Assembly: GCA_977017645.1 (NCBI GenBank) | Contig: OZ360221.1 | Span: 11,966,001 to 12,030,000 of the forward strand | Length of the DNA stretch: 64,000 bases | Direction of reading: 5' to 3' | Source: Torpedo marmorata | Lineage: Eukaryota | In this document: positions 10,535 through 62,070 of the stretch, piece by piece | Layout: each line of letters begins with the position of its first letter | How positions within the stretch are numbered: the first letter of the stretch is position 1 | Notes under the pieces: generated by a model | Told to the model about the DNA's origin: nothing | Databases searched by the model: none | Seen by the model: only the letters and a program-made list of their open reading frames with translations | Position numbers and translations under genes: made by a program

Positions 10535-10970
10535 GACCATAAGATATAGGAGCAGAGTGGGTCATTTGGCCTGTTGGGTCCGCTCTGCCATTCCATCATG
10601 AGCTGATCCATTCTCCCACTCAGCCCCACTCCCCTGCCTTCTCTCCATAACCTTTGACACCCTGTCTATTCGGATACTTATCAATCTCTGCCTTAAATAC
10701 ACCCAACGACCAGTCCTCCACAGCCGCCCGTAGTAGCAAATTCCAGAGGCTCACCGCTCTGGCTAAAGAAATTCCTCCGCAGCACTGTTTTAAATGAGCG
10801 CCCTTCAATCCTGAAGCTGTGCCATCTTGTCCTTGACTCCCCTACCATGGGAAACAACTTTGCCCCATCTACTCTGTCCAGGCTTTTCAACATTCAAATT
10901 GCTTCTACGACGTCCCCCCTCATTCTTCTGAACTGCAAGGAGAACAGTCCAAGAGTGGTCAAACGTTCCT
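10535..10970 (-). mobile_element. CR1/HER1 3' fragment
   Basis: LDRVDGAKLFPMVGESRTR remnant and ACCATAAGATATAGGAGCAG tail. Confidence 0.85.
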
Positions 10971-13289: not shown

Positions 13290-13665
13290 TAAGACCACAA
13301 GGTATAGGCTATTCAGCCCATCGAGTCTGCCCTGCCATTTAATCATGAGCTGATCCATTTTCCCACTCAGCCCCACTGCCCGGCCTTCTCCCCATAACCT
13401 TTGATGCCCTAGCTAATCAATAACCTATCAATCTCTGCCTTAAATATACCCAATGGCGTGGCCTCCATAACTGCCTGTGGCAAAAATTCCACAGATTCAA
13501 CCACCCGCTGGCTGAAGAAATTCCTCCACATCTCTGTTCTAAACAGACACCCTTCAATCCTGAAGTTTAACACAGAACATAAACACTACAGCACAGTAAG
13601 TTATGCCCTCTTGTCCTAGACTCTCCCACCCTGGGAAACAACATTTCTACATCTACTCTGTGGAA
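13290..13665 (-). mobile_element. CR1/HER1 3' fragment
   Basis: RVDVEMLFPRVGESRTRGHN remnant and tail. Confidence 0.85.
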
Positions 13666-17754: not shown

Positions 17755-18340
17755 ATGCTGCAACTGTACAGGGTACTGGTGAGGCTGCATCTGGAGTACT
17801 GCGTGCAGTTCTGGTCTCCTTACTTGAGGAGAGATATACTGGCCTTGGAGGCAGTGCAGAGGAGGTTCACCGGGTTGATTCCAGAGAAGAGGGGGTTAGC
17901 CTATGAGGAGAGATTGAATCGTCCTGGGACTATACTCGCTGGAATTTAGAAGAATGAGAGGGGATCTTATAGAAACGTATAAAATTATGAAAGGCATAGA
18001 TAAGATAGAGATAGGTTTTTTTTCCCACTGGTGGGGGAGACTAGGACATAGCCTCAAGATTATGGGTAGTAGATTGAGGACAGAGATGAGAAGGAACTGC
18101 TTTTCCCAGAGCGTGGTGAATCTATGGAATTCTCTGCCCATGGACGCAGTGGAGGCGACCTCAGTAAACATTTAAGACAAGATTGGATAGATTTTTGCAT
18201 AGTAGGGGAATTAAGAGATAGGGGACAAAGGCAGGTAGGTGGAGATGAGCCTGTCATCAAATCAGCCACGATCTTAATGAATGGCGGAACAGGCTCAATG
18301 GGCCAAATGGCCCACTCCTGCTCCTATTTCTTATGTTCTT
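17755..18340 (+). mobile_element. CR1 3' fragment
   Basis: LEYCVQFWSPYLRRDILALEAVQRRFT..MRGDLIETYKI. Confidence 0.88.
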
Positions 18341-28139: not shown

Positions 28140-29580
28140 ATGGGTGCCATTAATAAATTAATAAGAAGGCGAATGCAATGTTGGCATTCATTTCTAGAGG
28201 AATGGCAGACAAGAGCAGGGATGTAATGTTGAGACTCTATAAAGCACTGGTGAGACCTCACTCTGAGTACTGTGTACAGTTTTGAGTGCCGTATTTTAGA
28301 ATAGATGTGCTGGTGTTGGAGAGGGTTCAGAGAAGATTTACTGGAATGATACCAGGAATGAAAGGGTTAGCATATGAGGAACAATTGTCAGCTCTTGGAC
28401 TGTACTCGTTGGAGTACAGAAGGATGAGGGGGGGACCTCATAGAGGCATTTTGAATGCTGAAAGGCCTGGACAGAGTATATGTGACAAGAATGTTTCCCA
28501 TGGTAGGGGATTCTAGGACAAGAGGGCATAATTTCAGGATAAAAGGGCGTCAATTTTAAACAGAAGATGCGGAAAAATTTCTTTAGTCAGAGGGTCGTGA
28601 GTCTGTGGAACTTGTTGCCACAGGCGGCTTTGGAAGCAAGGTTGTCGACAGGTATTTGATTAGTCAGGGCATCAAGGGTTACGGTGAGAAAGCTGGGGGG
28701 TGGGGCTGAGTGGGAGGATGGATCAGCTCATGATTAGAATGGCGGAGCAGTCTCGGACCAATGGGCCTAGTTCTGCTCCTATATCTTGTGATCTTGTGAA
28801 TATTGTGCATATTTAAGCTATGTAAGATAACCAGCACAACCAATTGGAAGGCAGAATACAATGTTAATAGGAGGGCTCTGAGCGATGTGTACGAACTGAG
28901 AGGTCTTGGTGTCCATGTCTATAGGACACTTAAAGCTGTTGCATGGGTTGATAGCATTCTTATGAAGGCCAATGGAGTGTTGGCCTTCATTAACTGTGGA
29001 ATCAAATTCAAGAGCCAAGAGGTAATGACAGACCGTGGTTAGACCCCACTTGGAATATTGTGTTAATTTCTAGTCACCTCCCTACAGGAAAGATGTGGAG
29101 AGAGAAAGCAGGGGAGATTTACAAGGATGTTGCCTGGATTGAAGAGCATGTCTTGTGAGGATAGGTTGAGTGAACTTGGTCTTTTCTCCGTGGAGTGACG
29201 GAGGATGAGGGGTGACCTGATAGAGGTGTACAAGATGATGAGAGGCATTGATCGTGTGGACGGCCAGAGGCTTTATCCCAGGGCTGAAATGGCTAACACG
29301 AGGGGGCGTAGTTTTAAGGTGCTTGGGAGTAAGTACAGGGGAAATGTAAGAGGCAAGTTTTTCACAAGAGAGTGGTGGGTGCATGGAATGCCCTGGTGCT
29401 GGAGGCAGCTACAATTGGATCCTTTAAGAAGCTATAAGATGGGTACATGGAACAGAGAAAAATGGAGGGTTATGCAGTAGGGAAATTCTAGTCAGTTGTT
29501 AGAGTAGGTTATTAGGTAGGCACAATGCTGTGGGTCGAAGGGCTTATACAGTGTTGTAGATTTGTATGTTCGATGTTCTA
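28140..29580 (+). mobile_element. Two tandem CR1 3' fragments
   Basis: LERVQRRFTGMIPG and MRGDLIEVYKMMRGIDRVD, with two tails (about 28800 and 29580). Confidence 0.85.
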
Positions 29581-29744: not shown

Positions 29745-30770
29745 TTGAATTGTTTATTGTCATGTGTACTGAGATACAGTGAAAAACTTTGTTTTGCGTG
29801 CTATCCAGGCAAGTCCATGCAAGAATAAAAATATAGTGTTGCAATAAAATAAATGTGCGGAGAAGGCAGCAGTTCAGGGATATTGTTAAAGAGAAAAGTA
29901 CTGTTAAACAGTGCAAGGCATCATCCTTTATGACTGGGGGGTGGGTCCATTCAAGAGTCCAATAACAGCAGGAAAGAAACTGTCCTTGAATCCGGTGGTG
30001 CATGTTTTTAAACTCGTGTATCTTTGCCTGCAACATGACACATGACTATATTGTACAGTCCGTTTGTTGACATTTCTCTCTTTTGTATACGCATCTTTTC
30101 CTGAGTTCAGTTTTTTGCACTACCGATAAGTAGAAATTCTGTCTGGCCCACAGGACAAAGAATCTCAGGGTTGTATGTGATGTGAACTTTGAACTTTGAC
30201 GGGAGGAGGTAGAAGAGAGTTTGACTGGGGTGGGACGTGTCCTTTAATTTGTTGGCTGCTTTCCCGAGGCAGCGTAAGAGTGGATGGAGGGAAGTGTGAT
30301 GGCCTGCGCTGCATTTGCAACTCTCTGCAGTTTCTTGTGGTCTTCCCATCCCACACTGTGATGCATCTGGACAGGAGATATTCTACATTACATCTGTAAA
30401 AATTGATAAGGGACACTGGAAGCGTGCCAAATTTCTTCAGGCCTCTGAGGAAGTAGAGGCGCTGGTGCACTTTCTTATGTCGTGTCAACGGAATGCACTG
30501 TCCTGACCACATAACTCATTGTTGCGTAAGTAATAGCCCATCTGGCCCATCGAGCCTGCTCCATCATTCAATAAGATCACGGCTGATCTGGCCATGGATT
30601 CAGCTCTGCTTATCCACCTGTCCCCCAGAACCTTGATTTCCCTACTATGCAAAAGTCTATCAATTTGTATCTTAAATGCATTCAATGAGGCAGCCTCCAC
30701 TGCTTCCTTGGGCAGAGAATTCCACAGATTCACTACTTTCTGGGAGAAGCTGTTGCTCCTCATCTTTGTC
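29745..30770 (-). mobile_element. Cluster of Rex and CR1 fragments
   Basis: QRLYFLRGLKKFG..NFYRC (Rex) and NSFSQKVVNLWNSLP (CR1). Confidence 0.75.
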
Positions 30771-49904: not shown

Positions 49905-51760
49905 TGTTCCTTGACTTTCTCATCGGAAGACCACAGTCAGTACGAATTGGAAACAACGTCTCCTCCTCACTGATTTTTTTAAATATTTTATTTTTCATTT
50001 TCAGAAATTTTAAAAAAACATTAATAAACAATCACGAAATATACACAAATTTCAAACGTGTCAAGTACAGAATACATTTGACCCCTTAACCCTCCCTCCA
50101 TCACCCAAAAAGAATAAAACCGAGACAAAAGAAAAGGAAAAGAAAACTAAACGTACCGTCAGCGCTTACAACTTTTGTCCAAGTATTTGGGGATGACACA
50201 CCCTTAAAATAATTATATCTTACAGTATACCGTACCTCAGGGGTTTGATTACAACTGAGCACCCATGTGCTCCAAGTACGGTCGCCACACTTTAACAAAG
50301 TTATCATACTTATTTCTAAGACTATATGTAATTTTTTCCATGGGGATACAGCTGTACATTTCCGTAGACCATCGTGTGATGAGAAGGGGGGAGTCGGACT
50401 TCCAAGTAACTGCAATGCATTTTTTTGCTACGGACAGAGCAACTTTTACAAATTGAAATTGGAATTTAGATAATCTGTTGCTTATGTCCATGAGGTTTCC
50501 TAAAAGATACAACTCCAGGTCTAGTGGAAAGGCTACTCCCGTAATCCTAGTTAGTACGTTAGCTAAATCATGCCAAAAGGGCCTTACCTTTGCACATGAC
50601 CAGGTGGAGTGTAAAAAGGATCCAATTTCTATCCCACACCTGAAACACATTTCTGATATTTCTGATTTTGACGTGTAGTTTTTGTGGTGTGAGATGTAAT
50701 TGGTGTAGGAAATTATATTGAACCAGCCTATATCTGTCATTAATGACTGCTGTCATGCTGTCTAAACACCAGTCTGACCAGCATCGTTCGTGAATTGTTA
50801 TGCCCAAGTCCGACCTCCTCCTCACTGATTATCAACACAGGCGCACCCCAAGGATGCGTGCTTAGTCCACTGCTCTACTCATTATACACCCATGACTGTG
50901 TGGCCAGGCACAATTCCAATGACATCTACAAATTTGCCGATGACACCACAGTTGTCGGCAGAATCACAAACGGCAATGAGGAAGCGTACAGGAGGGAGAT
51001 AGATCAGCTCGTTGAATGGTGTAATGACAACAACCTTGCGCTCAACGTCAGCAAAACCAAGGAGATGATTGTGGACTTCAAGAGGAAGTCAGGGGAACAC
51101 GACCCAGTCCTCATCGAGGGCTCAGTAGTGGAGAGGTTCAAGAACTTCAAATTCCTGGGTGTCAACATCTCCAAGGATCTGTCCTGGAGCCTCCACATTG
51201 ATGCAATCACAAAGAAGGCTCGCCAGCAGCTATACTTTGTGAGGTGTCTGAGGAGATTCGGTATGTCACCGAAGACTCTCGTAAACCTCTACAGGTGTAC
51301 CGTGGAGAGCATTCTAGCTGGTTGCATCACTGCCTGGTATGGAGGCGCCAACTCTCAGGACTAGAATAAACTCCAGAGGGTTGTTAACTTGGCCTGTGAC
51401 ATCACAGGCACCAGACTTCACTCCATTGAGGACATCTACATGAGGCGGTGTCTTAAAAAAAGCAGTCTCTATCCTCAAAGGCCCCCACCACCGAGGCCAT
51501 GCCCTCTTCACTCTGCTACTATCGGGAAAAAGGTAAAGGAGCCTAAAGACGAGCACTCAACGGCACAAGAACAGCTTCTTCCCTGCTGCCATCAGATTCC
51601 TTAATAATCAATGAACCAAAGACACTTTTCGTGCACTATTATTTATATATATTTTTTATAGTAATGTCGTAAGATGGTTATAATATGAATGTTTGCACTA
51701 TGATGCTGCCGCAAAACACCGAATTTCATGACTTGTTCATGACAATAAATTCTGATTCTG
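49905..51760 (+). mobile_element. Rex1/Babar LINE split by an L1
   Basis: Near-identical to the 45345 copy and rejoins across 49976-50814. Confidence 0.9.
49976..50814 (-). mobile_element. 5'-truncated L1/Tx1 LINE
   Basis: CFRC..HSTWSC..EKITYSLRNK, 16-bp TSD CTCCTCCTCACTGATT (49960-75, 50815-30). Confidence 0.92.
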
Positions 51761-52990: not shown

Positions 52991-53549
52991 AACATAACAG
53001 ATATAGCAAGTAATTAAGAAGGTAAGTGGGATGTTGGCCTTTCAGTACACTGCCAGCTACGCCATCAGGGCCTGACGCCTTGCGACGGCTGACCTCTTGA
53101 AAGATATTCTGACGTTGGCCTCTGCGTTAGATGCCTAAGCTTTGGAGACAGTGAGTCAGTTAACCCTGCAGGGGGTTCGTTTTCATTTTGGCTACTGACA
53201 GTAGAAACAGCCTGAGGTATAAAATGGTCATGACGGTCGTGTGGAGTTCAAAAGGTTGAGATCATGGGAAAACTTCGGAATGGTGCAATATCTTGCTTTC
53301 AGCACAGCAGCTGAGAGCACAGGTATCCTCCATAGAGATTGCAGGTAGGTAGGTGGTATTCCTAGGGGGTGTGAATGAAAGGAAAGTACAAAAGAAAGCT
53401 GGCCTGATCCCATTGTATCTCTCTCCAGGTTAACCGATCTGTGGTGGTGGATATCTTAAGGGAGCAGAAATAGGCCATTCGGTCAGTCGAGTCCATTCTG
53501 CCATTCCATCATGAGCTGATCCATTCTCCCACTTAGCCCAACTCCCTTG

Positions 53550-53740
53550 TCAGTCGACATTTTGAGCCGGAACTCCTTCATCAGGAATAGCAAGAACCTG
53601 AATAAAGGTGGGGGGGGCGGGCGGGGAGGGCGTTTGGAGCACTGGCTGGCATGTGATAGGTGGATACAGGGGGGAGGGAGCAGAGAAGAAAGCTAAGAGG
53701 TGATAGGGGGCAGTGGCAGAGGGGTGAGAAAATGGCACTC
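53550..53740 (-). mobile_element. Penelope pLTR fragment
   Basis: Minus strand CCTGATGAAGGAGTTCCGGCTCAAAATGTCGAC preceded by a C/T-rich region. Confidence 0.6.
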
Positions 53741-54390
53741 CAATAGCAGAAAGTGGAGGCGGTGCAGAGGAGGTTCACCAGGTTGATTCCAGAGATGAGG
53801 GGGTTGGCCTATGAGGAGAGATTGAGTCGTCTGTGACTGTACTCGTTAGAATTCAGAAGAATGAGAAGGGATCTTATAGAAACGTATAAAATTATGAAAG
53901 GCATAGATAAGATAGAGGTAGGTAAGTTGTTTCCATTGGTGGGGGAGACTAGAACTAGGGTACATAGCCTCAAGATTCAGGGTAGTAGATTTAGGACGGA
54001 GATGAGGAGGAACTGCTTTTCCCAGAGGGCGGTGTATGGAATTCTCTGCCCATTGAAGCAATGGAGGCTACCTCAGTAAATATATTTAAAACAAGTTAGG
54101 ATAGATTTATACATAGCAGAGAAATTAAGGGTTATGGGGAAAAGGCATATACCGTATATTTCGGCGTATAAGTCGACTCGCGGATAAGTCAACCCCCCTT
54201 TTTCAGCCTAATTTTAATGGTTTTATTGTATATCCGGTGTATAAGTCGACCCCCAATTTTCAGGCTGTCCGGGCCTCCCAGCAACAACCCAAAATTTGTT
54301 ACAACACCCCAATCGCCAAGTAACAAAGCTGTAAGTTAAGCAAGTAAGTAAAAAAAACAGTAAAAAAAACCTTTGCTTCTGGCCGGGAAG

Positions 54391-54549
54391 ATGCCAAATG
54401 GAGCTGGGTCCAAGTCTTCAGTTTCGGCTGCAGCCAGAGTCGGCGACGGACGACTCCATTCTCCACATCGGGTGCGGTGCTGCCTCATTGAAGAAGTTGC
54501 CTCACTGCCCAAGTGTGCTCGGTGCAGGAACCACGGTACATGTCGGCTC
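54391..54549 (+). pseudogene. dmrt1: Captured 5' fragment of a dmrt1-like gene (start codon plus N-terminal part of DM domain), frameshifted
   Basis: ATG CCA AAT (MPN.., as in DMRT1 N-termini), then AAG AAG TTG CCT CA CTG CCC AAG TGT GCT CGG TGC AGG AAC CAC GG TAC ATG TCG = KK(L)P-/LPKCARCRNHG/YMS, versus DMRT1 KKSPRLPKCARCRNHGYAS. Confidence 0.82.
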
Positions 54550-55136
54550 CCGAGCAGGTGCGGGGACCTCGTTCTCCCGGGCAGGAGCGGCGACGTCGTT
54601 CTCCCGGGCAGGTGCGGGGACTTGTTCTCCCGAGCAGGTGCGGGGAGCTTATTCTCCCGAGCAGGTGCGGGGAGCTCTTTCTCCCGGGCAGGAGCGGCGA
54701 CCTCGTTCTCCCGAGCAGGTGCGGGGAGCTCGTTCTCCCGAGCAGGTGCGGGGAGCTCGTTCTCCCGAGCAGGTGCGGGGAGCTCGTTCTCCCGGGCAGG
54801 AGCGGCGACCTCGTTCTCCCGAGCAGGAGCGGGGAGCTCGTTCTCCCGGGCAGGAGCGGCGACCTCGTTCTCCCGAGCAGGTGCGGGGAGCTCGTTCTCC
54901 CGAGCAGGAGCGGGGAGCTCGTTCTCCCGAGCAGGTGCGGGGAGCTCATTCTCCCAAGCAGGTGCGGCGACCTCGTTCTCCCGGGTAGGAGCGGCGACCT
55001 CGTTCTCCCAGGCAGGAGCGGCGACCTCGTTCTCCCAGGCAGGAGCGGCGACCTCGTTCTCCCGGGTAGGAGCGGGGACCTCGTTCTCCCGGGCAGGAGC
55101 AGCGACCTCGTTCTCCCAGGTAGGAGCGGGGACCTC
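54547..55136. repeat. GC/CpG-rich 24-bp minisatellite (about 24 copies) inside the transposon
   Basis: Unit CTCGTTCTCCCGRGCAGGWGCGG(GGAG/CGAC) repeated in tandem. Confidence 0.95.
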
Positions 55137-55353
55137 GGGCTCTACAATTGAAGAATATCTGGGTGGTTTATGGCAGCGCCCGGCGGTGGGGAGGTGTCAG
55201 GGAGCGGCGGCGCCAGCGGTGGGGAGGTGCTTCCAGCGTCGACCTATACACCGAATCGGTTTTTCTTGGGTCGACTTATACGCCGAATCGGGTTTTCAAG
55301 GGTCGACTTATACGCCGAATCAGCGTGGAGTAGTTTTTGAGCTGATTTTACGG

Positions 55354-56225
55354 TGTTATGGACCATGACTGACCATTTGGACTGCAGACGGTCAGCAGGA
55401 AGGATGAAGTCTTTTGGAGTATACACTGGGGCCAGGTACTGAAAGAGTTAACTTCCCCAGCTACTTGGTGTACCCAGACAGAGAGAGACCAGAGAGAGAG
55501 AGAGAGAGAGACAGACTGGACAAGATACATTTGTTTCACTTTTGCAAAAAGCAGGTGCAGATTTCTGCAGGAAAAGCAGACAGTTGTAAGTTGCAAAGGC
55601 TACAGGACACAGCCAAATCCAGGCTTGTGCAAGCCAGAGAAAATCACTGGCAGAAGAGCACATGGCCTCCTGTCTCAGAGAGAAATTCTGAGAAAAAGCA
55701 ACTTCTGTGGAGAACAGGCGTGAGATCAGCGAGACTAGCTGTGAGATTCAAGCACACGCCTAAATCAGTGGTATACTGATCTGGAACTTGCAATCCTTAT
55801 GAACATACAAGAAGGGGACGTCATCAGAGAAGAAAACAAGTATTTGTAAGTATAAACAGTCATTGTCTCTCTCCAACGTTCATTCAGAAGTACTTCTACC
55901 AGACACAGAGCTGAAGTTGAAGCCTGAACTTAGAGAGTGAATTTGTAGACTGTATTATCTTTTTTTTTGACTGACTTGTTTTTTATGACTGACCTGGGGT
56001 TTTTGGGGAAAGTTTTTTTTTCCATTTTTACATAAGGGTTGGGCACAGACTGTAATGGTCTGGGCTTTACACACACACCTTTTAGATAAGAATAGTGTTT
56101 ATAGACGTTTATAGTGGGGTTAATTGTTGTGAAATTATATGTTTAGTTGTGTTTAATAAATATAAATTTCAATTTTACCCCTTTTGCATTGCGTCTTCTG
56201 TCGTTGCTGGTTTGAATTTGTAACA
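55354..56225 (+). mobile_element. Solo LTR (Gypsy-like, 4-bp TSD) nested in the Tc2-type element
   Basis: Termini TGTTA...TAACA flanked by ACGG on both sides (55350-53, 56226-29), AATAAA at 56155-60, internal (GA)n. Confidence 0.8.
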
Positions 56226-56879
56226 ACGGTCTCAAAAGTATATCTGGCGTATAAGTCGACCCCCGTTTTTTGAGAGATTTTTGAGGGTTTCAAGACTCGA
56301 CTTATACGCCGAAATATACGGTAGGTGGAGATGAGCCTATCAGATCAGCCATGATCTTATTGAATGGCAGAGCAGGCTCGACGGGCCAGATGGCTGACTC
56401 CTGCTCCTATTTCTTATGTTCTTGTGTAAGGGAAGGGTTTGGGGGGCTGGAGGAAGGGTATCGATGACAGGTGGGGGTATTATTGGATTTGATTTGCATG
56501 AAGCTTTGAAAGGTTGCATGAGACAGAGTTGGTTTCAAATAAGAACTCAACTAACTGTGTGTGTATTAAAATCTTGCTAATTTTCCAGTTTCAGGCCAAC
56601 CAAGGGATAATGATGAGGGTCTATTGTCGTTAAATAAGTACGGATATGTGCAGATGCACTGAAATTCTTACTTAGAGCACCCAAATAGGTACATATGATA
56701 GATCTACAATAGTATAATTTAATTATCACATATTCCAAGACTGAAAAAAGATTTGAACATAAAATAGATAAATATTCAGTTGCAATTAGTTCAAGGGGTG
56801 GGGGGGGGAGTGATGTTTCAGTAGTGCAGACACATCTTTTGGTGGTCCCAGAATAGTTTATGGTTTGGAGAGTAAGAGA

Positions 56880-57540
56880 GCTTCAAGAGCCTGATAGAAT
56901 CATAGAAAACCGACAGCACAATACAGAGGTGCAGACATGAGACTTCTGTACCTTGTGCCTGAAAGCAGCAGCAACAAGAGATTGTGACCAGGGTGAACAG
57001 AAGCCTTGAAGATGTTGGCTGCCCTTTTGAGGCAGCACCTCACATAGTCGCTTTCACTAGATGGAAGGTCGGTGGCCGTGATGGACTTGGCTAGATTTGT
57101 CGCTTTCTGCGTTCCTGGGCACTCAAGTTTCTAAACCAGGCCATGATGCAACCAGTTAGGATGCTTTTCGCAGTTCACCTGTAGAAGTTTGATGGAGCAT
57201 TTGACAACATGTCAAATTCCCTCAGATTTCTTAGAAAGTCGAGGCGTTGGTGTGTCTTTTTCATGGTTGCTTTGATGTGCTGGCTCCAGGAGAGGTACTC
57301 CAATATGTGGACTCCCAGGAACTTGAAGGTACTAATCCTCTCCACCGCCGTCCCGTCGATGAAGACTGGTTCCTGGCCCCTCGGCCTCCCCTCCCTTATG
57401 TCCACAATCAGCTCCTCGTTTGTGCTGACGTTGAGAACAAGATTGTTGTTCTGGCACCACCCAACCAGATTCTCCATCTCCATCCTATATTCTGATGCAT
57501 CATTTCCCGTTATTACACGGTGGCGTCATCAACAAATTTG
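56880..57540 (-). mobile_element. Rex1/Babar fragment
   Basis: LVGWCQNNNLVLNVS..FKFLGVHI..LSW. Confidence 0.85.
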
Positions 57541-60059: not shown

Positions 60060-62070
60060 GGATGGCCAGGGGAACATTAGGGAGAACCAGCATGAATTTG
60101 GGTGTGGGGAATCATCTCTCTTGAACTTGATAGAATTTTTTTGAAGAGGTAACAAAGAGTGTAGACGAGGGCAAGCAGTTGATGTTATTGATATGGATTT
60201 CGGTAAAGCATTTGATATGGTCCCGTGTGGAAGGTTGGGGCACATGGGATAGGAGGCCAGCCTGCCAACTGAATAAAAACAAATGTGGATGTAGAGGGCA
60301 GTTTTTCGGACTAGAGGCTTGTGAGCAGTAGACTGCCTCAGGGTTCAGTACTGGGACCCTGGCTTTTTGTAATGTGCATAAATGATTTGGACAAGGATAT
60401 TTGTGGCAAAGTGAGTAAGTTTGCTGATGACACAAAAATATGTGCTACCATGGACAGTGAAGGTTACCTGGGTTTGCAACGGGATCGAGATCAGGTGGGG
60501 AACTGGGCTGAGGGGTGGAGAAGTGCGAGGCGCTGAATTTGGGTAAACCAGGACAGTACTTGCTCTGTTAACAGCCGTGCCCTGAAGAGTGCTTGCGGAG
60601 CACAAGGACTGAGGGGTGCAGGTTCATAGCTTTTTAAAGATAGCAGCACAGGTTGACAGAGCAGTGAAGAGAGAGTTTGGGACTCTTGGCTTCATTGGTC
60701 AGAGCATTGAAAACAAGTGCTGGGACATCATGTTAAAGTTGTACAAGACGGTGGTGACTTAGAATATTCTATGCAGTTTTGGTCATCTCGCTACAGGAAG
60801 GATATTATAAATTTGGAATTTTAAAAGTACAGAAGAGGTTTACGAAGTTGTTGCCAGGATTAGGGAAGTTGAGTTAGCATGAGAGAATGGAAAACCTCGG
60901 CCTGTTTTCCTTAGAGCGTAGGAAGTTGAGAGGATTTTATTGAGGTCTATAAAAAATCATGAGGGCCATAGATACAGTATGGCAAATCATGACAGTTCAC
61001 CAGAATGGGAGAATCCAAAACGAGAGGGCATAACTATAAGGTGAGGTGGGTGGGATTTAGAAGGGAGGTGAGGGAACAGTTCTTCACTCAGAGGGTGGTG
61101 GGCACATGGAACCAGACAAAGTGGTGGAGGCAGGGACGTGAGATTCCTTTAAGAAACATTTGGATAACTGCATGGATGGGAGGGCTCTGGGCCTAATGGG
61201 GGCAAGTGGGACTAAAGCAGGAGGGCACTTTGTTTGGCATGGGCCTGTGAGCCTGTTTGGACCATAAGATATAGGAGCAGAAGTGGACCATTCAGCCCAT
61301 CGAGTCCGCTCCGCCATTCCATCATGAGCTGATCCATTCTCCCACTCAGCCCCACTCCCCTGCCTTCTGCCCATAACCTTTGATACCCTGACTATTCAGA
61401 TGCCTATCAATCTCTGCCTTAAATACACCCGACCTAGCTTCCACAGCTGCCCGTGGTAGCAAATTCCAGAGGTTCACCACTCTCTGCATTCTGTTTTAAA
61501 TGGGCGCCCTTGAATCCTGAAGTTGTGCCCTTTTGTCCTGGACTCCCCGACCATGGGAAACAACTTTGCCACGTCTACTCTGTCCAAGCATTCGAAATGC
61601 TTCTGTGAGTTCCCCCCTCATTCTTCTGAACTCTAAGGAGTACAGTCCAAGAGCCGTCAAACGTACCTCATGTGCTTATCCCTTAATTCCAGGAATCGTT
61701 CTTGTGAATCTTCTCTGAACCCTCTCCAATGCCAGTACGTCCTTTCTTAAATAAGGAGCCCAAAATTGTACTCCGTATTCCAATTGAGGCCTCACCAGTA
61801 CCTTAAAGCCTCAACCTCACATCCTGCTCTTTCATCCTATTTCTCTAGATATACTGTAAATGCCAACATTGCATTCGCCTTCTTCACCACCGACTCACCT
61901 GGAGGTTAACCTTTAGGGTATCCTGCACAAGGACTCCCAAGTCGCTTTGCACCTCGGAATTTTGAATTTTCTCCCCTTCCAAATAATAGTGAACCCTTTT
62001 ATTCCTTCCAACAAAGAGCATGACCGTACACTTTCCAACATTGTATTTCATTTGCCACTTCATTGCCCAT
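60060..62070. mobile_element. Tail-to-tail CR1 fragments (plus 60060-61260, minus 61261-62070)
   Basis: PQGSVLGP..KFADDTKI, plus a reverse tail ACCATAAGATATAGGAGCAG. Confidence 0.85.

Follow-up and report, generated by a model that had tools for sequence, protein, structure and literature searches.

How does the opening part of dmrt1 come to lie between the terminal inverted repeats (TIRs) of a DNA transposon, and has it been multiplied along with them? The question is raised by a 64-kb stretch of Torpedo marmorata DNA (contig OZ360221.1, positions 11,966,001 to 12,030,000; hereafter the window, in whose numbering all positions are given), where a TA-flanked TIR element spans 54152-56321 (2.17 kb including a nested insert) and encloses sequence resembling the start of that gene. 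We read this locus, with a probability of roughly 0.85, as a copy of a non-autonomous cut-and-paste DNA transposon that carries a transduplicated piece of dmrt1, was amplified as a family, and was later hit by an insert resembling a long terminal repeat (LTR).

Terminal repeats and a dmrt1-like interior

The features on which this reading chiefly depends are the ends of the element, the duplicated target site and the gene-like part between them:

54150-54151, no strand: left TA of the target-site duplication (direct reading, paralogue comparison)
54152-54176, + strand: left TIR, 25 nt, perfect (direct reading, repeat search)
54261-54390, + strand: segment upstream of the ATG, candidate dmrt1 5' untranslated region (UTR), multi-copy with the family (contig coverage at 54335)
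54391-54549, + strand: putative dmrt1-derived pseudo-exon, codons 1 to ~68 (frame reads, Pfam, PDB, tblastn, frameshift-aware alignment)
56297-56321, - strand: right TIR, 25 nt, perfect (direct reading, repeat search)
56322-56323, no strand: right TA of the target-site duplication (direct reading, paralogue comparison)

Read directly, 56297-56321 is the exact reverse complement of 54152-54176 over 25 nt, with a TA outside each end, and a repeat search returned the same pair as 30-nt arms (54150-54179 and 56294-56323) that are 97% complementary, 29/30 positions with the flanking TA included. The perfect 25-bp TIRs of the preliminary description are thereby borne out, and so is its TA duplication, for which the window supplies a paralogous empty site. 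A second copy of the surrounding host repeat (17846-18340; 85% identical on the left, 17846-18233, and 88% on the right, 18236-18340) has one TA at the corresponding position (GGCAGG-TA-GGTGGAG), whereas the host copy has GGCATA-TA-element-TA-GGTGGAG; one TA was thus duplicated at insertion. The left flank at the element itself reads TATA.

Between these ends, ATG CCA AAT stands at 54391, and frame 1 from there reads MPNGAGSKSSVSAAARVGDG..., beginning MPNGAGSKSS. The same N-terminus is present in all eight chondrichthyan DMRT1 relatives recovered (from Hypanus, Pristis, Chiloscyllium, Mobula, Heptranchias, Leucoraja and, twice, Scyliorhinus). LPKCARCRNHG follows at 54505-54537, 38 codons downstream and in the frame of the 54391 ATG; frame 2 adds DDSILH...GAASLKKLPH and frame 3 YMSA. 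The two 1-nt deletions assumed in the preliminary description are accordingly needed for the flanking KK.P. (frame 2) and YMSA (frame 3) but are unnecessary for LPKCARCRNHG. In Pfam the sole genuine match, with E 0.034, is to DM and covers positions 3-14 of the 47-position profile, and the best PDB match is the DMRT1 chain 4yj0_A (E 0.031). A homologue search with the first 55 residues, in which candidate length was tied to a 325-aa open reading frame (ORF; band 182-579 aa), gave 31 candidates, 8 of them with E <= 10, and all 8 are the chondrichthyan DMRT1 proteins named above. Searched against the window with tblastn, these eight give E values of 4.6e-9 to 1.3e-6 over 54391-54537. All their other matches in the window have E of at least 0.59, except for one in the adjoining minisatellite (54557-54724, E 0.001), which reflects Gly/Ala/Ser-rich composition.

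A frameshift-aware alignment to Hypanus DMRT1 runs from the start Met onward with 44 of 56 aligned codons identical, and its score of 148 compares with a mean of 62 (standard deviation 8.3, maximum 89) over 100 shuffles, a z of ~10. Four of the eight proteins were tried in this way, the two from rays or sawfish scoring 148 and 146 and the two from sharks 129 each. The alignment requires two or three frameshifts in total: one extra base at 54451, one base lost near 54503 and another lost after 54537. Some 16 codons are also deleted internally, between DSIL and GA.S. Sequence comparison thus supports a derivation of the fragment from dmrt1, codons 1 to ~68, as had been proposed for it; at the protein level, the likeness is not limited to the CARCRNHG codons and reaches residues outside the DM box.

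That the resemblance arose by chance, or that transfer ran in the opposite direction with the transposable element (TE) as the source of the dmrt1 N-terminus, is extremely improbable. The individual library E-values are weak (~0.03), and a phmmer search of 1.84 billion representatives with the 55-aa frame-1 read found no match at E <= 0.001. The query is short for a library of this size, however, and the phmmer null is not evidence against homology, while a chance origin would have to account for 18 matching codons among the first 20, counted from the Met, and for 11 consecutive matching DM-box residues in the same frame, in addition to the z of ~10. Reverse transfer conflicts with the human DMRT1 chain 4yj0_A, which has the same DM-box residues, so that the gene predates the lineage-restricted element. 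A 66-aa read, searched in a length band of 36-115 aa, gave four candidates, one of them with E <= 10: the eukprot DM-domain protein P0009.

A complete DM domain in an open frame was not found, as 12 of the 47 DM positions remain and minisatellite follows after 54549. With its frameshifts and internal deletion as well, the fragment cannot encode a DNA-binding DMRT protein, and we regard the dmrt1 piece as a decayed passenger that is most likely neutral and without function. The 130 nt that precede the ATG may represent dmrt1 leader sequence.

A probable family in four read sets

Whether the cargo has been mobilised was addressed with contigs of four coded public runs (X1, X2, X3 and X8, labelled as four organisms), placed on 53500-57000 at a likeness of at least 80%. 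The runs consist of Logan contigs, mostly 150-400 nt long, whose depth is not a copy number. At several sites in or just upstream of the dmrt1 part, the contigs are numerous and depart from the window copy in a concerted way. At 54335, 100 contigs of X1 and 77 of X3 carry a majority letter other than that of this copy; at 54422, C replaces the T of this copy in 107 contigs of X1, 6 of X2, 99 of X3 and 8 of X8, converting Val11 to Ala, the DMRT1 residue; at 54464, A forms the majority in X3 (30 contigs) and turns His into Asn, again the DMRT1 residue; and 82 contigs of X1 depart from this copy at 54450. So many distinct contigs cannot stem from a single native dmrt1 exon, and differences that point to DMRT1 residues fit descent from a dmrt1-like ancestor. 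At the right terminus, 254 records of X3 stop matching just past 56323 and continue into flanks that are mutually unlike (agreement 0.38), as expected for copies at many different loci. These observations suggest a dispersed, amplified, cargo-bearing family with many copies in the four sampled organisms. The proposal that the element was mobilised after capture and that a dispersed family exists thus gains support, from X1 (107 contigs at 54422, 82 at 54450) and from X3 (99 contigs at 54422, 254 records at the right terminus). Contigs that join 54147 directly to 56324 (five in X1, three in X3) represent paralogous sites without the element, in keeping with the single TA of the in-window paralogue.

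Over the unique flank to the right of the element, X3 has single-copy-looking contigs that are ~93% alike to the window (243 bases, 16 other letters, 2 gaps), which makes organism C, the source of this run, a relative rather than the same species. Ratios of depth to the single-copy-looking flank (~25-32 in X1, 13-20 in X3) would give hundreds to thousands of copies; we set depth aside as a measure of copy number and do not rely on it.

Several observations weigh against an amplified family with this cargo. Among the contigs listed, none links the dmrt1 part to both TIRs, or joins cargo, TIR and flank. In X1 and X3, depth is ~5-fold lower in the bin 54436-54552 than in 54319-54435, and many copies may lack the DM-box end or differ there, forming subfamilies. 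The organisms are identified by code only. No second copy of the element, nor a further copy of any of its parts, is present within the window, and translated copies were not found in the protein libraries (the 36-115 and 182-579 aa bands and phmmer). The match to the parent copy is at the protein level, and the boundaries of the captured piece are approximate. Finally, this copy differs from the family majority at at least 8 listed sites within 54152-55351, and it is therefore not brand new.

Some of the same observations would suit a cargo that is private to one or a few copies, having entered by secondary insertion, or as a local pseudogene, between the ends of a common TIR family without ever being mobilised: no listed contig spans from cargo to TIR, and depth in the terminal bins is 3-15 times that in the DM-box bin. 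Such an arrangement is nevertheless hard to reconcile with the 107, 82 and 100 distinct contigs of X1 and the 99, 30 and 77 of X3 at the sites described above, or with a majority that differs from this copy, twice toward the DMRT1 residue, for which one native exon is insufficient. We consider it very unlikely and retain the amplified, cargo-bearing family.

Site 54450 has almost no depth in X3, where neighbouring sites are deep. Family members may differ structurally near this position, for example without frameshift or internal deletion.

Remaining anatomy, host repeat and nested insert

Apart from its termini and cargo, the element contains TIR-like units, a minisatellite and the nested insert, and it sits in a repeat of its own:

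53754-54149, + strand: host repeat, 3' tail resembling a long interspersed nuclear element (LINE), highly repeated, left of the insertion (depth, in-window paralogue)
54229-54260, + strand: inner TIR-like unit, a second copy of the 15-nt TIR core motif (54236-54250, 1 mismatch) with a C-run and a T-run
54547-55137, no strand: 27-bp GC-rich minisatellite (21.9 copies, 89% matches, 70% G+C)
55231-55321, - strand: tandem array of three 32-bp TIR-like units in the opposite orientation to the left end (repeat and motif searches)
55350-55353, no strand: ACGG, left copy of a 4-bp duplication whose right copy is 56226-56229 (both junctions read)
55354-56225, + strand: nested LTR-like insert, 872 bp, outside the canonical TIR element (ends, contig joins, depth, CpG)
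56238-56262, + strand: TIR-like unit in direct orientation (motif search, self-comparison)
56324-56423, + strand: host LINE-like tail, right of the insertion (paralogue 18236-18340)

The 15-nt core motif of the TIR, allowing up to 2 mismatches, occurs seven times in the window against a chance expectation of 0.01, and all seven occurrences lie inside the element: + units at 54163 and 54236, the three - units of 55231-55321, a + unit at 56246, and the right TIR. The inner unit at 54229-54260 is an 88% direct match to 56238-56270, and the unit at 56238-56262 can pair with the right TIR as a fold-back (-16.9 kcal/mol, z -3.7, equalled by 0 of 200 shuffles). These repeated units are candidate transposase binding sites, as expected of such elements. 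The element contains 13 ORFs of at least 50 aa; the four scanned against Pfam contain no transposase domain and yielded only DM and two chance-level matches. Neither the repeat search nor self-comparison found, within the element, an inverted duplicate of the dmrt1 part able to form double-stranded RNA (dsRNA), and the one match of an Rfam scan over 53500-57000, to mir-14, is sub-threshold (19.8 bits where the gathering score is 53; E 0.97) and is taken as chance.

Because the minisatellite unit is 27 bp long, a multiple of three, and holds no stop, the three + frames are open through the array. A 331-aa ORF (54373-55368) was considered as a gene and rejected as a by-product of this array. The minisatellite was likewise rejected as a continuation of dmrt1: by tblastn and frameshift-aware alignment, the similarity ends at YMSA.

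The preliminary description had treated the full 2.17 kb as a single element. This does not hold, since the structure is composite and 55354-56225 is a nested LTR-like insert missing from other copies. The insert has the ends TGTTA...TAACA (TG..CA) with ACGG on both sides, and an AATAAA at 56158, ~60 nt before its end. Contigs that join 55351 to 56228, skipping 876 bases, occur in X1 (6), X2 (1) and X3 (1); at the joint, three letters could belong to either side. In X1, moreover, 105 loose ends at 56228 continue with the sequence that precedes 55352 in the window. In X3, depth over 55489-55956 is 0, and the depth profile of the insert is unlike that of the surrounding element; its CpG observed-to-expected ratio is 0.25, against 0.74-1.84 in the TIR element. 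With TG..CA ends, a short target duplication and element copies without the insert, the features of a solo LTR are present, and we read 55354-56225 as a putative solo-LTR-like insertion into this copy. As most copies of the element are without it, the canonical TIR element is ~1.3 kb long. The insert, of which no other copy exists within the window, is much deeper than its surroundings in X1, X2 and X8; the depths suggest a lineage-restricted, very abundant repeat. An (AG)n run occupies 55476-55515 within it.

The host repeat is older. Its CpG ratio is 0.23-0.35, compared with 0.74-1.84 in parts of the element and 0.46 in the whole window, and the high ratio of the element, together with its intact TIRs, indicates that the present copy of the element is much younger than the repeat it entered. 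Depth over the left tail is very high, with loose contig ends at 53754 in X1 (559) and X3 (542); over the right tail, loose contig ends of X3 fall at 56423/56427. A tail ORF (53861-54079) has no Pfam match; the preliminary description assigned the tail to CR1, for which LINE-like is used here. At least seven further copies or fragments of the LINE-like tail lie in the window (17846-18340, near 470, 10550-10950, 13330-13660, 28300-28800, 30540-30770 and 61260-61730), all but 17846-18340 weaker. An ORF at 50795-51364 (+ strand) matches RVT_1 (E 3.5e-14) and is a candidate member of the element that supplied the host tail; with an ORF at 57175-57483 (- strand) that has an ALKBH8_N-type match, it places retroelement remnants on both sides of the transposon. 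The window contains 349 N letters.

Origin, consequences and known systems

We posit that dmrt1 codons 1 to about 68, possibly with some 5' UTR, were captured once, in an ancestral element. Capture would most likely have occurred by gap repair or by template switching during repair or replication, models that are discussed by Tan et al. 2021 (PMC8277862). The captured piece is fused to the 27-bp GC-rich minisatellite. A transposase acting in trans on the TIR and the subterminal units would then have amplified the cargo-bearing element; it was plausibly of Tc1/mariner/pogo type, a class that the TA duplication fits and to which the candidate Tc2/pogo assignment of the preliminary description belongs. 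The present copy inserted at a TA in the LINE-like tail and later received the 872-bp LTR-like insert with its 4-bp duplication.

Could the cargo do something in its hosts? Dispersed transcripts of the dmrt1 5' part could feed germline small RNAs acting on dmrt1, or the copies could serve as regulatory or first-exon modules that seed chimeric genes. The retention of the ATG and ~130 nt upstream, the multi-copy family in four coded organisms and the undecayed CpG content would suit such a role, as would the contigs that X8, guessed to be RNA, has over the dmrt1 part (8 at 54422); Tan et al. 2021 (PMC8277862) report that some animal Pack-TIRs are transcribed, often as chimeras. None of the runs is recorded as RNA, however, and X8 is possibly DNA; the frameshifts and internal deletion show no coding constraint; the element holds no inverted duplicate of the dmrt1 part that could form dsRNA; the nested insert, to go by where its AATAAA lies, does not point toward the cargo but in the opposite direction; and Rfam returned only its sub-threshold, chance-level match. 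A functional cargo is thus unlikely. In a still bolder scenario, the family, with perhaps hundreds to thousands of copies in several elasmobranch-like genomes, would have dispersed the dmrt1 start codon, its leader and the first DM-box codons genome-wide; germline small RNAs or chimeric first exons arising from it would modulate dmrt1, or new dmrt1-derived genes would emerge. This is quite unlikely.

Even as a neutral passenger, the amplified piece would be of interest. Cut-and-paste transposons of plants routinely capture gene fragments. Animal cases are reported to be rare, nearly all of them single-copy (PMC8277862), and an amplified cargo-bearing family in several species would, if true, be an unusually clear animal case of transposition-dependent transduplication. 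Its cargo, moreover, comes from the 5' end of dmrt1, duplicates of which have evolved into sex determiners repeatedly. In practice, the copies can give false dmrt1 signals in gene prediction, in the polymerase chain reaction, in sex-marker screens and in the mapping of RNA sequencing reads in cartilaginous fishes, while different ancestral DMRT1 residues, kept by members in different species, make the family a datable marker. A germline role, if true, would mean that a further layer had gone unrecognised in a lineage that reportedly determines sex differently from other vertebrates (PMC12318234). The finding bears on transposon and sex-gene evolution alike, within the limits set by a likely inert cargo and by the short contigs on which copy number is based.

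In sharks, Dmrt1 is reported to be male-biased in juvenile gonads and undetected in gonadal primordia (PMC12318234), so that it would be surprising if dmrt1 fragments acted there as master regulators. Our literature search found no description of a TE-borne dmrt1 exon-1 fragment, the supplementary case list of PMC8277862 lying outside its scope; neither shark nor dmrt occurs in the main text of Tan et al., and the 15-nt motif, as a literal string, has no match in the papers searched. Incorporation of protein-coding fragments into an animal DNA transposon is known from Turmoil-1 of C. elegans (PMC2572040), likewise by transduplication; its fragments are located within the terminal repeats of a single element, whereas here the cargo is internal and amplified. 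The Xenopus gene dm-W (PMC9250109), one exon of which came from a DNA transposon, and the medaka gene dmrt1bY (PMC2820524), whose regulation was rewired by TEs, are similarly dmrt1-derived and tied to TEs. Both are single-locus genes with an intact DM domain, in contrast to the dispersed, frameshifted fragment with 12 of 47 DM positions described here.

Pack-MULEs, which belong to another superfamily and to plant hosts, offer a parallel despite clear structural differences: Mutator-like elements have long TIRs and 9-11-bp duplications, whereas the present element has 25-nt TIRs, a TA duplication and an animal host. What is shared (PMC8277862, PMC5861414) is transduplication of a gene fragment followed by amplification of the cargo-bearing non-autonomous element. 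The closest counterparts are the Pack-TIRs of animals (PMC8277862), which likewise combine TIRs and a target-site duplication with a host-gene fragment inside and no transposase (here, among the 4 of 13 ORFs scanned). The defining features are present at our locus, namely both TIRs, a TA duplication with a paralogous empty site, and an interior from a host gene (at the protein level), and the element qualifies as a Pack-TIR as Tan et al. 2021 use the term. Their survey of 100 animal genomes reports 370 Pack-TIRs; TcMariner elements, which with one other group are the principal carriers, account for 115. Four cases are multicopy, and the worked example is on three chromosomes. Unlike these, the present cargo appears in 80-107 distinct contigs per site in one run and in four organisms. 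The published pipeline demanded at least 90% identity to a unique parent copy, a filter that the decayed dmrt1 cargo would probably fail. A highly amplified, multi-species family with decayed dmrt1 cargo would thus be a new, unusual member of the known Pack-TIR class.

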